35,845 nucleotides of DNA from NCBI GenBank assembly GCA_025603075.1, contig MU626457.1, forward strand, positions 1 to 35,845, given 5' to 3'. The position numbers and the translations under genes were made by a program. The notes below the pieces were generated by a model. It was not told where the DNA came from. It ran no database searches and saw nothing but the letters and a program-made list of their open reading frames with translations. Positions 3,830 to 23,304 of this stretch are shown here, one piece after another (positions within the stretch are counted from its first letter, which is position 1; each line of letters begins with the position of its first letter). This DNA is from Neoconidiobolus thromboides FSU 785 (taxonomy: Eukaryota; Fungi; Entomophthoromycota).

Positions 3830-4139
3830 TTAGATAGAAAGCTGTTTGAATTTGTTGTTTTATTTCAATTAATAAAAAATGGATTTACCGTACTATTTTA
3901 TATTGTTTTTGATAATAATTTATAACTTTGGTTAGTAATAACTTAAACTACAAGCTTAAGCATACATTTAATTGCGGATTTATCACTTTTATATCTTGAT
4001 TCATGTTTGTTATGTGATAATCCCTTTTTTATGATATTCTTTTTTGAAAGACATTCCTTGAAACAAAAATCAATAGCTCAATTATAAAAAACAGAAAAGA
4101 AAGGATATGAACAAATGGTTAAAAAGCAACTCGATTTAC

Positions 4140-14480: not shown

Positions 14481-14583
14481 TATGGGAATGTATTTTTGTA
14501 TTTAAGAATTTTACTAACAGTTTTTTCACTCAAATAGCGCTTAAAAGATGGAAAAAATAATGAAGCCAAAAAAAACATCCCCA
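14481..14583 (+). mobile_element. MITE-like repeat copy 6
   Basis: TATGGGAATGTATTTTTGTATTTAAGAATTTTACTAACAG...GAAGCCAAAAAAAACATCCCCA. Confidence 0.85.
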
Positions 14584-16305
14584 CATGTATATCATATCTG
14601 AAGAAATTTTGAAGATTTAGAAAATATGGAAATACATCGATGGATAAGACATATTTTTCACTACTTTAATCCCACTCTTTTAACGGGGAGTTCATTTTCT
14701 TAGTTAAGGAAAAGGAGTGCGTTATCCTTGGCTACCTGTTTCTCCTTTAGACGATCGTTGGATTTTTTTTGAAAATATGTACCAAAGACAGTAATCATTA
14801 TATTAACATAACAGCTACTAAAGAAGCATTAATAGCAAGGAGAGTGTTGACTGAAAGACTGTAAAATTTATAATAAAATATATCGCTTTAACGATAAGGT
14901 ATCAAATGTAGGTATATAATCTTTCTTATTAAATTAGAAACAATAGCAATAATAGCTATAAGATTTTTATATTTTCTTTTTTTTATTCAATATGATATTT
15001 TTGAATTCATTAGTAAGTACAAAAAACAGAATCATTTTAACACTTATATTTACTTAAATATTATTAATTCAAGCTAAATGTATTTGTTTTTTAGTTTATA
15101 GACATAGATAAATCATTTATAAAAATAAATTAGAAACTTTTATTCGATATCAAAGCTCAAGATATATATATGGGAATATTAGGTCAATATATTTGAAAAG
15201 ATGACAATGATGGTGTAATTATTCTGTCTACTAATAGCAAAAAAACTGTAATCTAAATTAGAAAGTGGCGATTTGCAAATACTTTAAAGCCTTTTTAATT
15301 TAAGCTAAAGTTAACACTGGTGCCAGTCACACTAGTTAAGTTCACCATCCTTACAAGTCAAAAGATAGCTTTTTGAAAACTAGCATCACTTTGGGTCTAG
15401 TTTTATTTATTATGTCCATTCAAGGGTAGGAAATTCTTAAGCACACTTTCTATATTACTAAAAACTATCCATTAATAAGCTGTGTCCTCTAAATCAACTA
15501 GTAAACTATTGAATTCAAAAAAATTCAATTGAAAACATTGTGCTTTATTAGTGTAAAAGAAAAACCTGGGTTAATCTGGAAAGAGATCGAAAATAGAAAG
15601 GCCTTTCAGCCTGAAGTTAAGGCTGTAGCGAAGGGTGATGAAAAGCAATTGTTGATAGAGATGAATAAAACCCAAGCTTTAGTGGGTTTTCTAAAATGTA
15701 GTTTAAAAGGAAAAGCCATTTTCTTTTAAATATTTTGTAATATGGGAGAGAGTGAGGCATTGAGTTTTTATTGTTGCAAATAAGATACAGAGCTTCGATT
15801 CTTCAAAAAAGAAAAAGTTGTTTCATTAAAATTTATGAAAACTAAAATATAAGTATAGATAAAAATTAGAAATTAAATGATTAGACAATATTGGTATACT
15901 AATATTAAATGAAAACTGGGCTAATATTAAAATATCTTAATACCTAAAAATAATTATTACTTGTCTTTATACTCTTTCTCCCTTTTCTAAGCCCTCACTG
16001 CTACTACCTTCAGAGCTATCCACTCATATTGAGCTAAATTACTAGAAAATAATTTCTCTACTTCCCTGGCAGCGATTGCTCTACTATACCCCTACACAAG
16101 TTTATATCATTTAGAATATAAATTTATCTAAGTTATCCCAGTCAAATGCCAGTATTCTTACGCTCAACTATGTTCTTTTATTCTAGTAGTTTTTTGCATT
16201 ACTTTTTTTTGGCTTCATAACCTTTTTAGCTAACTTTACATTTTATTACCTCTTTAATAAATAAAAGCTTTTTTGAGATTTTTGAAAAATATCAAGAATT
16301 CAATG

Positions 16306-16410: not shown

Positions 16411-17605
16411 TGGTATTTGTTTATTTATTATTAATTGTTTTATATTTATCTAAGCTCTTTTTTGTCCCCATTAAAATAGACAGAAATATTTATAGCAATT
16501 TGTCTGTATTATTTATTATTATATTCAAAGTTGTCAACATTCTGATTTATTTTATAAAACTATTTAAATGAAAAAATCTATTTTTTGTAATTTTTATTTT
16601 AAAATTATCCAAGTACTACTTTATCATTTTCATTTAGGTTATACATTGACAATATTATTACTTGACTTTAACTTTCAATATGGCCCAATCTTAACTCAAA
16701 CTTGGCTTGTTGAACGGAGGATCTTTTGATAAAAATACTTTTATTCTGTCCCCACTTTTGCATTCAGAGGAAGGCTTAGGGGTATATTAACAACCCCTTC
16801 AATACTAACACTTTAATTTAAATTGAACAATTCAGATTTTTCAACTTATCATGGCTCCTTTTGCTACTTGTCTGAGAAATTGCATTCTAAAATAACTGAG
16901 ATTGATTTTAGTTACTATTGAGAATATTAATAGATTAATTTAATATTATTGGGTTAAAATTGTATTTAAATAAATTGGAAGCTATCATTCATTTAAATAG
17001 TAAATAGAAATTAGCTGATGCTACTTTAATATTACACCATTATTACTAGTCACTGTAATCAGAGAGTCATCATATCAAAGTCAATTTTTACAGAATTTTA
17101 ATATAATCATTTATTGAGAATTTAGGAACAGTGTTCCTTCCAAAGATTACAATAGATCTTAACAAGGATCTATTGTGGGTCATCGGATGCTTAGTTTTCA
17201 ACCAGCAATGATCCAACCTCAGTAGGTACTTCATAGGTCTGGATTTACCCGTGCACAAGGATAAAGCTTATCGGATGTCAAATTGGGACTATTTATAGTC
17301 CATTTGAAACATTGGGATTTTTAATTAGTGGGATTCTGAAACCTTTTCAAACTTTTTAAGTAATAGTTGATTGGCCAATGATGAAGTTGGGATCTCATTA
17401 TGAGATTTGAAATCTATGGTTTATTCTTAAAATCTAGAAATTTAGAGTCTAATTTTATAACTCAAAATTTACAAATTAGGTTTCAAAATCAAATGGTTGG
17501 TGGGGTAAAAGTTACAAAATTTTAGTCAACCCAAAGTTAATGTTTTGAATTTTTCATTTTATATGTCAATTGTAAATTCATCCGTTTAAATTTCTATCTT
17601 TTTAA

Positions 17606-19153: not shown

Positions 19154-21048
19154 TTAATAACGTTCTTTAAATAAAGAAGGTTTCCAATCAATAGGATGAG
19201 ATTCTGGAGTAGCTTGATCATCTTCCTATATAAAATAAAATAAAATAAAATAAAATAAAATAAAATAAATAAATAGAACCCATCAATTTCATTAATATTA
19301 TTAGAATTTACCTTCCAAATTTTAATAGTTTTATCTGCTTCCCCAGTAATAAATCTTAAACCTGTTTTATCAAAAGAAGAACTAAAGATACCCGCTTCGG
19401 AATCTAAAGATCCAGGTTGAGGTAAAGATTCCACTGTTTGAAAATTATATCCACTTTTCCAATCCCAAAATTTTAAACTACCATTATCGCCTAAATAAAA
19501 ATACATTATATATTATGTTACATTTTACATTATTTAAACGTACCACCAGTAACCATTACATTATCCTGATTAATTGAAAGAGAATTGATAATAGCATCAT
19601 GACCCGAATAGTTTTGAATAAATTTACCTTCAGGACATTTAAATTGTTTAATGTTATCCGGAGAAGCCGATGCAAAAGAAAATTCTCTTGGATGTAAATC
19701 AATAGCTCGAACTGCTTTTTTATGATGTGTAAGTGTATGTAAAGTTTTACCCGCCGCTAAATCATATAATTTGACGGTCGCATCCATAGATCCAGTAATA
19801 ATTTGTGGATCCGCTTCTTGACATTTAACTGTTGGTATAGTACCACGATGACTGGTTAATGTATGAATACATTGTTTAGTTCGCATATCCCATACCCTTG
19901 CAGTAGAATCTCTACCCGCTGTTACAAGCACATCTAATACAGGATGTATGTCTAAGGCATATACAGCAGATAAATGGCCATGATAATGTCGAATCACTTT
20001 GTTATATTCTAAATCCCAACATTTCACCATTTTATCTTCACCACAAGAAAATAAATAAGGATGACGAGAGGATACACCTAAACCTCTTACAGTACTTATG
20101 TGGCCAGTTAATGATAATTTTAATGTTCCAGACGCTAAATCCCAAATCTATTTATTTATCAAATAATAAATAACATTGCTTAATACTAAAATGAAATAAA
20201 ATGATTACTTTTATTGTTCTATCACCAGAACCAGTAGCAAACCATTTATTGCCAGGTTCAACAGCAATGGATCTTACCCAACCTAAATGACCTGATATTA
20301 CCTAAAATTGAAATTAGCATAATTGATATAAATTAAAATAGGTTATCTATTATTCTTACTCTCATAAGTTTCCAAGGAGCATGCCATTCTGGTTTAACTC
20401 GATCAATTTCCCGACGTTTAATTAAAGCGCCCCCTTCACCAGTACCAAATATACTGGAAGTATTACTTTTTTTATTTAATAAAGTTAACACCCCTGCTGA
20501 AGCATCCATTTGTGTACTTCAAAATAAAAATTAATAACATAGTTTGATATAATAAAATGGTATTACCCTTGATTGATGGATAATTGATTTAATGCATCGT
20601 TTGTCACACACTCATTTTCTATTGATAAATCTTCATCTTCAACTGGATATAATGAGAATAAAAATAAATTAATGATGCAATTTAATAACTAATTAGCTTA
20701 CCTGCTACTTTATCTTGATCTACTTTATTTTGTTGTTTAGTTAAAGATTTTGGTAACTGTTTTAGGTTATGATATTCATCTTTTATTTTTACGGATAATT
20801 TTATTTTTTGACTAAATATTTCAAAATAAAATCATTTAAAAAAGTATAATAATTTCAATCAAATTTATTTACCTTGCTGGTATATCTTCTAACTTGGTAT
20901 CTATCACTTGTTTATTTTCAGGAAATAAAGCTAATGCTCTTTTTTTACTATTTTCTAATAATAATTTTATATGTTGTTGAGGTTCTATTGAGTCTCCTTT
21001 TATCTCCTTTTCATTTGCATTCACTTGATTTTCCAATTCACTTGCCAT
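19154..21048 (-). CDS. PRP46: Pre-mRNA splicing factor Prp46/PLRG1 (WD40, NTC), multi-exon
   Basis: [13 protein letters not shown]|[31 protein letters not shown]|IWDLASG; [23 protein letters not shown]; SLDSEAGIF; last exon [16 protein letters not shown]; GT-AG introns; true ATG at 21048 (ORF track start at 21054 is TTG). Confidence 0.95.
19231..19268. repeat. (TAAAA)n microsatellite in the last PRP46 intron
   Basis: About 7 pentamer units forming the minus-strand pyrimidine tract. Confidence 0.8.
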
Positions 21049-21213
21049 CTTCAAAAAAGTAAATTTGAAATTTGAATAAAGATTAAACCCAATAAATTAT
21101 CATTGGTTTAAAATATCGACCAAAATATCAACATCGAAATTATTTTTAAAAAAACAATTGAAAATGCTTTTACTCTATCTTTCGGATTTAAATAAAGTAA
21201 CAACCAGAAAACA
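21049..21213. promoter_or_regulatory. Putative bidirectional promoter between PRP46 and prefoldin 5
   Basis: Head-to-head start codons separated by 165 bp. Confidence 0.55.
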
Positions 21214-21991
21214 ATGGCAACACAAGATAAAAATTCAGAGATGATAGATTTGGCTTCTCTACCACAACAACAATTGGAGCAAGTTAGAGAACAATTAAGA
21301 GAAGTAAAACGAAACATAACATTAATTTGAAACTGGATTAAAAAATTATAAATATTTAGGAAATTTCTCATTTTTCTACTTCATTTAATAAATTAAAACA
21401 AGCTCAAGTTACATTTTTAGAATGTAAAACAAATTTGAATGAAATCAATGAAGGGAATAAAGGTAATTATATAAAAAAATAAGTATAATTGAATATCAAT
21501 TCTTAATTTTAATCTGTATTTAGATAACCAAATCTTAGTACCACTTACAAGTTCAATATCCTTTTTTTATAAATAATAATACTAACATGAAACATATAAT
21601 GATAATTTATTATTAATCTTTAACCTATTAACACATTTATGTACCTGGTCAATTAAGAGATGTTCAAAAAGTTATTGTGGACGTTGGTACCGGTTATTAT
21701 GTTGAAAAGGTAATTTCATTATTTTTATTTCTATTTAAGTTTATTAAAAATGTTGATCCAAATTAGTCAATATCTTCGGCTAAAACTTATTATGATAAAA
21801 AAGTCAAAGAGATACAAGCTAATTTAACTACTTTACAAGATACTATTGCTAAAAAAAGAAATAATCTTAATGGTAAATATTTAGATTTGTTGTATTATAT
21901 AATGTTTTAATATCTTCTTTTATATTTAGTCTTAGAAGATATTTTAGTTTATAAATCCAATCAAGCTTTAAAAGCAAGCGCTAAAAAATAA
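21214..21991 (+). CDS. GIM5: Prefoldin subunit 5, 155 aa; exons 21214-21303, 21360-21462, 21524-21555, 21635-21709, 21767-21872, 21930-21991
   Basis: Spliced product contains ILVPLTSS|IYVPGQL...[13 protein letters not shown], the alpha-prefoldin signature; exon lengths sum to 468 nt; missed by the ORF track because exons are short. Confidence 0.93.
21556..21634 (+). other. U12-type (minor spliceosome) AT-AC intron, 79 nt
   Basis: 5' end ATATCCTTT, branch site TCTTTAAC at 21617-21624, 3' end AC; removal restores PLTSSIYVPG exactly. Confidence 0.92.
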
Positions 21992-22381: not shown

Positions 22382-22454
22382 TGCTCCGTATAGGGCTTGA
22401 ACCTATGACCTTAGCGTTATTAGCACCACGCTCTGCCAACTGAGCTAACGGAGC
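22382..22454 (-). tRNA. tRNA-Ile (anticodon AAT), 73 nt, intronless
   Basis: GCTCCGT TAGCTCAGTTGGCAGAGC GTGGTGCT-AAT-AACGC...GGTTCAAGCCC...ACGGAGC A; acceptor stem, D arm and T loop all present. Confidence 0.95.
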
Positions 22455-22722
22455 CCGATTATTATTTACTGTTTGCATAAAATTTATATATTTAATTTTT
22501 TTTTAAAATTATTGACTAATTATTTAGTAATGTCGATGTGATGTGTAATTCAATGAAAGGCAAAGGAGAGATAAATGGATGGAATTTTTAGGCATGAAGT
22601 CGATGGCGAACGTTCTATGCATAATTATAGCAATACTCTTTTTAAATAAAGAAAAAATTGATATATGATAAATATGAAGCTTTATTTTATTTCTAAAATT
22701 AAATCAAGCCGACCATTCAATA

Positions 22723-22825
22723 CATGGGAGTGTCTTTTTTGACTTGATTATTTTTTCCATTTTTTAAGCGCTATTTAAGTGGAAAATTTGTTAGTAAGAT
22801 TCTTAAATACAAAAATACATCCCCA
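22723..22825 (-). mobile_element. MITE-like repeat copy 8
   Basis: ATGGGAGTGTCTTTTTTGACTTG...AAGCGCTATTTAAGTGGAAAATTTGTTAGTAAGATTCTTAAATACAAAAATACATCCCCA. Confidence 0.85.
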
Positions 22826-23200
22826 CATTGTGAATTATTGGGACACTCCCATATCTCAGAGCTTATAACGTCACTCCCATCTACATATCCAATTATAAAT
22901 AAACTATTAATATCTATATAATTGTAACAGTCCTCATGTTCCAGATTGATAATCGATTTAACATTAGCAAATTCTTCAGAAGTGAATATACTTATTGCTT
23001 CCATCAACATATTTCAATAGCATTTCAATCTTGTCATAAAAAACTATATTAATCTTCTTCTTTAATATTCGAGATATTATCATATTTAAAAAAAATTACC
23101 TGGATATAGACATGATAAATATTATTTTGTAATACAAAAAAGCGAGGATACATTCTACCATTATTGGAAAGCATTTTATCATTCAAATAATGATTTAGGA

Positions 23201-23304
23201 TATGGGGATGTATTTTTGTATTTAAGAATTTTACTAACAAATTTTCCACTCAAATAGCGTTTAAAAGATGGAAAAAGTAATGAAGCCAAAAAAACACTCC
23301 CATA
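23201..23304 (+). mobile_element. MITE-like repeat copy 9 (close to consensus)
   Basis: TA-TGGGGATGTATTTTTGTATTTAAG...GAAGCCAAAAAAACACTCCCA-TA. Confidence 0.88.

Follow-up and report, generated by a model that had tools for sequence, protein, structure and literature searches.

The stretch of DNA analysed here (the window) is the whole contig MU626457.1 of Neoconidiobolus thromboides FSU 785 (assembly GCA_025603075.1), composed of 35,845 nucleotides (nt) with a G+C content of 25.9%. N. thromboides is an insect-associated fungus of the order Entomophthorales; a paralog of one window gene lies on a different contig of the assembly, and the glucanosyltransferase of the window has its nearest relatives in Entomophthora and Massospora. 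It carries a gene for prefoldin subunit 5 (PFDN5) with six exons, the coordinates of which are given in Table 1 together with those of the other features of the locus. Four of the five introns of this gene are of the U2 type and short (56-61 nt); their donors read GTAA... and their acceptors TTTAG or ATTAG. The third intron, of 79 nt, begins with AT and ends with AC, and is the subject of this work. Head-to-head with the prefoldin gene lies a PRP46/PLRG1-like WD40 gene (19311-21057, minus strand). An ortholog of this neighbour, with approximately 85% amino acid identity in tblastx segments, occupies the same divergent position beside PFDN5 in Mortierella alpina (L006:1-1319, minus strand), and the pair is conserved across fungal phyla. 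Downstream of the prefoldin gene, at about 390 nt from its stop codon, is a tRNA-Ile gene (AAT; 22382-22454, minus strand).

Table 1. Features of the prefoldin-5 locus and the snRNA gene identified in the window, with the evidence for each.
Feature	Position	Strand	Evidence
Prefoldin subunit 5 gene, ATG to stop, 6 exons, 155 aa	21214-21991	+	Own model; RNA contigs join all five introns
Exon 1	21214-21303	+	Model; RNA joint 21303^21360
Intron 1, U2-type GT-AG, 56 nt, phase 0	21304-21359	+	Model and RNA contigs
Exon 2	21360-21462	+	Model and RNA contigs
Intron 2, U2-type GT-AG, 61 nt, phase 1	21463-21523	+	Model and RNA contigs
Exon 3, 32-nt micro-exon, encodes (D) and 10 residues	21524-21555	+	Model
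Intron 3, U12-type AT-AC, 79 nt, phase 0, 15% G+C	21556-21634	+	Sequence and RNA joint
U12-type 5' splice site of intron 3, ATATCCTTT, matches /RTATCCTT	21556-21564	+	Sequence
Branch-site motif of intron 3, TCTTTAAC, 7/8 to TCCTTAAC	21617-21624	+	Sequence; one mismatch to consensus
3' terminal AC of intron 3	21633-21634	+	Sequence and RNA joint
Exon 4, 25 residues, most conserved part of the protein	21635-21709	+	Model and homolog comparison
Intron 4, U2-type GT-AG, 57 nt	21710-21766	+	Model and RNA contigs
Exon 5	21767-21872	+	Model and RNA contigs
Intron 5, U2-type GT-AG, 57 nt	21873-21929	+	Model and RNA contigs
Exon 6, stop codon included	21930-21991	+	Model and RNA contigs
Major U4 snRNA, RF00015, 88.9 bits, full model	17126-17262	-	Rfam; low-depth RNA contig cover

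The product of the gene can be assigned by its sequence to prefoldin subunit 5, to which it appears nearer than to subunit 3 (VBP1) or to the archaeal alpha subunit. Over the full model, identity to proteins designated prefoldin subunit 5 or alpha in Polychytrium, Mucorales and Mytilus is 47-55%. The 14-residue peptide that spans the junction between exons 3 and 4 aligns without gaps to human PFDN5 (LVPLTSSMYVPGKL; chains 6nr8_5 and 7wu7_5), with an E value of about 5e-13, and among the matches to solved structures the archaeal prefoldin alpha subunits reach only E values of 0.03-0.08. The annotation deposited for the contig has a 155-aa product with a precomputed PF02996 match, spanning 21214-21991. 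An earlier note on this DNA had supposed that standard gene predictors would probably mis-model the exon; this supposition did not hold for the deposited record, whose product agrees with our AT-AC model in both length and span, so that intron 3 is probably not mis-modelled there.

Introns of the U12 type are characterized by the 5' splice site RTATCCTT and by a TCCTTAAC-like motif located approximately 10-20 nt from the 3' splice site, and they need no polypyrimidine tract. The 5' end of intron 3, read from 21556, is ATATCCTTTT, and the second A of the branch-site motif TCTTTAAC is 11 nt from the last base of the intron; the branch A is presumably 21623 or 21622, 11-12 nt before the intron end. 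Exon 3 ends at 21555 with CCA CTT ACA AGT TCA (PLTSS), and exon 4 starts at 21635 with ATT TAT GTA CCT GGT (IYVPG). A scan of the sequence found no AG within the intron, the first one past 21556 being at 21656-21657, and if the intron is retained it encodes ISFFYK followed by TAA, a stop after six codons. Because the intron has no AG and its retention brings in this stop, no route to a full-length protein other than the AT-AC splice is evident, and for the same reasons the minor spliceosome would be needed to make prefoldin 5. The intron also contains TACTAAC, the yeast-type U2 branch consensus, at 21580-21586.

The 5' motif by itself is not rare in such an AT-rich window: RTATCCTT occurs seven times on the two strands, against 4.1 expected. 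Six of these matches, at 4101 (-), 5204 (+), 8692 (+), 27706 (-), 32010 (-) and 33737 (-), were rejected as intron starts, since they either fall within coding ORFs or are not followed by a branch motif at a suitable distance. The site at 21556 is the only one of the seven with a properly spaced branch-site motif, and it stands out because the 5' motif, a branch motif at 11 nt, an AC end and the boundary of a conserved peptide come together there. It is also set apart by the excision of the intron in RNA.

The RNA evidence consists of assembled (de Bruijn) contigs of public runs, the RNA nature of which was partly guessed and from which neither the use of a junction nor intron retention can be quantified. 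Runs X1, X2 and X3 belong to organism A and X6 to organism C (95-99% alike), and the runs come from two studies. The joint 21555^21635, with AT..AC ends and 79 nt skipped, is present in contigs of all four runs, with depths of 148 (X1), 250 (X2), 306 (X3) and 101 (X6), which are similar to the depths of the four GT..AG joints in the same gene. Having AT at both borders, the joint can be moved by up to 2 nt rightward, which leaves the mRNA unchanged. All the other intron-sized joints with placeable ends that the RNA contigs revealed in a 6-kb stretch are GT-AG on the strands of their respective genes. The joint observed is exactly the one that the earlier note had put forward for verification in RNA, and the features that it had described for the intron from the sequence (the 79 nt, the motifs, the AC end, the lack of AG and the stop after six codons) all proved to be correctly placed.

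The contigs also contain intron 3 in unspliced form. A 117-nt contig covering 21539-21655 has a depth of 18.5 in X1 and 10.8 in X2, and a second, variant contig of the unspliced intron has a depth of 9.4 and 6.75, respectively. The ratio of unspliced to spliced depth is roughly 7-16% in X2 and X1, contig depth being a poor measure of it. In the bins of the four GT-AG introns of the gene the unspliced depth in the RNA contigs is zero, and since these neighbouring introns are silent, DNA contamination is unlikely. There is thus a hint that intron 3 is selectively retained and is spliced more slowly than its neighbours. A higher retention of U12 introns is known (PMC4615840), and the pattern of intron 3 is consistent with it.

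Relative to the window, the variant contig has six substitutions and seven inserted bases (13 positions), all of them intronic. It keeps ATATCC(TT), TCTTTAAC and the terminal AC, and in it the TACTAAC at 21580-21586 is destroyed by a C>A change at 21582 and by insertions. Such a pattern would result if selection acted on the U12 signals and not on a U2-type branch site. Run X3 carries both C and T at 21259; this position and the two versions of the unspliced intron suggest that two haplotypes, nuclei or strains are present in the samples. At 21931 the contigs of X1, X2 and X6 and a loose end of X3 have T where the genome has C, a synonymous change (GTC->GTT) in the first full codon of exon 6. 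Strain or allelic variation, an assembly error and editing would each account for it. As a result of this T in the RNA, the joint of intron 5 was reported as 21872^21932 with TT between its ends. Further downstream, at 22600-22999, the summed contig depth is in the hundreds, from many contigs that are 90-95% alike, a depth that fits the dispersed MITE-like repeats at 22723-23304.

Exon 4 was searched against a representative library, and the full-length matches were followed to named orthologs and from these to genomic loci, where we compared the phase-0 site between ...LVPLTxS and xYVPG.... Five loci have an intron there. In Rhizopus microsporus (L005) it has 67 nt and the form ATATCCTTTT...TCCTTAAC, with 11 nt to AC; in Blyttiomyces helicus (L003) it has 121 nt and the form ATATCCTCTT...TCCTTAAC, with 13 nt to AC; and in Polychytrium aggregatum (L007) it has 214 nt and the form ATATCCTCTT...AC, with a weak branch motif. 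The intron of Mytilus edulis (L004), of 315 nt, reads GTATCCTATT...ATCTTAAC with 10 nt to AG, and that of a vertebrate-like Logan contig (L009), of 86 nt, reads GTATCCTTTC...TCCTTAAT with 16 nt to AG. There is no intron at the site in Mortierella alpina (L006), Coemansia asiatica (L010), Zymoseptoria tritici (L011), Thecaphora frezii (L012) and Thecamonas trahens (L008). In the vertebrate-like contig the exon ahead of the U12 intron likewise measures 32 nt, and upstream of it stands a phase-1 intron whose codon position matches that of intron 2 in the window; the micro-exon is therefore conserved as well.

Traces of the same intron are found in open reading frames and protein models. Among 150 representative matches, 17 ORF fragments that read into the intron from an animal-type MYVPG exon have a terminal Q (CAG), and five codons upstream of this Q all of them have V/I-L-D/N, which corresponds to TCCTTGAC or TCCTTAAC in the DNA. 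Eight other fragments of the same set, ahead of LYVPG, have Y or H (TAC or CAC) as the last residue. The Blyttiomyces helicus model P0125 reads the 3' end of the intron (LILNSPQH ahead of LYVPG) and drops the micro-exon, and the vertebrate-like protein P0246 is without the micro-exon too. Directly ahead of the U12 intron, the Blyttiomyces locus (KZ996196.1; L003:2200-2530) contains a run of N together with a second copy of the micro-exon and of the beginning of the intron; P0125, annotated as a 117-aa product, is mis-modelled over this region.

Since a U12-type intron occupies the same phase-0 site in Mucoromycota, in two chytrids and in animals, intron 3 of N. thromboides is inherited and not new. 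The PFDN5 U12 intron is, as far as these sequences indicate, ancestral at least to the opisthokonts. The simplest history would be a U12 intron in the opisthokont ancestor, found as AT-AC in the fungi examined and as GT-AG in the animals examined, and under this history the intron would have been precisely deleted, rather than converted, in Dikarya, Mortierella and Coemansia. The earlier note had suggested that the position may be ancestral, and the U12-type introns that three further fungi and two animal sequences have at the same site agree with it. Its central proposal, an AT-AC intron of the U12 type in prefoldin-5, is borne out by the RNA joint, by the gap-free alignment with human PFDN5 and by the orthologous U12-type introns.

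We are highly confident that 21556-21634 (plus strand) is a genuine U12-dependent AT-AC intron of the prefoldin subunit 5 gene of N. thromboides FSU 785. We infer the dependence on U12, since the search for the corresponding RNAs covered the 35.8-kb contig, which holds no gene for U11, U12, U4atac or U6atac. A few AT-AC introns are spliced by the U2-type spliceosome, and removal of intron 3 by this major machinery has to be weighed. The TACTAAC inside the intron, as well as the lack of minor snRNAs in the 35.8-kb contig, would speak for it. However, introns of that kind have a U2-like 5' site and a distal branch site accompanied by a pyrimidine tract, and they lack the U12 motifs. Intron 3 differs from them: its 5' site is the full ATATCCTTT, and a TCCTTAAC-like motif stands at the distance from the 3' end that U12 introns need, namely 11 nt. 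The TACTAAC is moreover the element lost in the variant allele, which keeps the U12 motifs, and the orthologs keep RTATCCT and the branch motif near the 3' end across fungi and animals despite the switch between AT-AC and GT-AG. Removal by the major spliceosome is consequently very improbable.

A second alternative is loss or strong reduction of the minor spliceosome in N. thromboides, with U12-like introns handled by an altered machinery. The Rfam search of the 35.8-kb contig, at the gathering threshold and at E<=1, found no U11, U12, U4atac or U6atac, and returned only U4 and tRNA, a result that would speak for such a loss. Against it, the U12 motifs are tightly conserved between two alleles, which implies that they are still read, and related lineages have minor snRNAs (PMC2396436, PMC10639083). 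We regard this alternative, too, as highly unlikely; the splicing of intron 3 and the literature on related fungi point to the retention of U11, U12, U4atac and U6atac in N. thromboides. That the 21555^21635 joint is an artefact, produced by contig mis-assembly or by template switching at the 2-nt AT repeat, has a negligible probability: although the contigs are de Bruijn assemblies and the placement of the joint is ambiguous by 2 nt, the joint recurs in four runs of two organisms and two studies at depths like those of the neighbouring GT-AG joints, restores the frame gap-free against human PFDN5, and falls where five other genomes have an orthologous intron.

Two further stretches of the window were considered as small RNA genes. 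The one at 22540-22645 (plus strand), beside the tRNA, has the U6atac-like words GTGT..ATGAAAGG..AAGGAGAGA..GGATGGAA, a T5 run at its end and the Sm-like sequences AAUUUUUAGG / AATTTTTAGG. As a candidate minor snRNA it was rejected, with no snRNA match at E<=10 on 306 nt, a fold z of -0.3 versus shuffled sequences and little RNA depth; judged by these Rfam, folding and depth results, it is probably not a minor snRNA. The other, at 14550-14745 (minus strand), gives a weak MIR169_2-like Rfam match (23.6 bits versus a gathering score of 50, E 0.05) and most likely represents an inverted repeat rich in A+T, not a miRNA.

The established U12 pathway is the basis of the steps that we propose for intron 3, in which the acting snRNPs and the branch-point A are putative. 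The U11/U12 di-snRNP would pair with the 5' site ATATCCTTT and with the branch site TCTTTAAC together. The U4atac/U6atac.U5 tri-snRNP would then enter, and U6atac would displace U11 at the 5' site. The branch A (approximately 21623, or 21622) would attack the 5' site, and ligation of the exons at the AC located 11 nt downstream would give ...PLTSS joined to IYVPG... in frame.

Intron 3 is cleanly documented as an RNA-supported U12 intron for an entomophthoralean fungus. A minor intron of PFDN5 that is known from humans is thereby common to chytrids, Mucorales and Entomophthorales, with switching of its subtype and repeated clean loss, including clean loss in all the Dikarya examined. It offers a useful annotation marker for early-diverging fungi, given that the Blyttiomyces helicus and vertebrate-like models are broken there. 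The intron is otherwise an ordinary case of an ancient conserved intron in a lineage where minor splicing is expected: it provides an extra data point for the reconstruction of ancestral minor introns and leaves the known distribution and mechanism of minor splicing unchanged. Only mildly new are the breadth of conservation of the intron and of the 32-nt micro-exon, and the selective retention in the RNA contigs. As intron 3 alone of the five introns is also found unspliced in these contigs, one could speculate that the U12 intron and the preceding micro-exon form a module, ancestral to opisthokonts and perhaps older, that has been kept because its slow splicing throttles the output of prefoldin-5. 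We consider this idea rather unlikely; if true, the supply of a tubulin/actin chaperone would be tied to the activity of the minor spliceosome even in a fungus.

Among known systems, minor introns and their snRNAs have been documented in Zoopagomycota, Mucoromycota and chytrids (PMC10639083, PMC2396436, PMC2846911), with 249 minor introns in Basidiobolus meristosporus and 205 in Rhizophagus irregularis, and U12-type introns also in Rhizopus oryzae and Phycomyces (PMC2846911, PMC2396436, PMC10639083). The main texts of these surveys of fungal U12 introns do not name Neoconidiobolus or Conidiobolus, and the supplement of PMC2426677 has no prefoldin entry. Intron 3 shares with the U12 introns of early-diverging fungi their class, their consensus motifs and their short, AT-rich form, and the signals of the Rhizopus microsporus PFDN5 intron are nearly identical to its own. 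Its host differs, belonging to the Entomophthorales, whereas the published fungal sets come from Basidiobolus, Mucorales and Glomeromycotina. Human PFDN5 is itself a published minor-intron gene (PMC8034651 supplement, chr12:53296276-53297849; PMC10853781; PMC12332006). Its minor intron lies in the orthologous gene and is of the U12 type, like intron 3, and the vertebrate-like contig, together with ORF fragments identical to human, indicates that the two would occupy the same site. They probably represent one ancient intron in two subtypes, as the PFDN5 introns of Mytilus edulis and of the vertebrate-like contig are GT-AG, in contrast to the AT-AC introns of the fungi.
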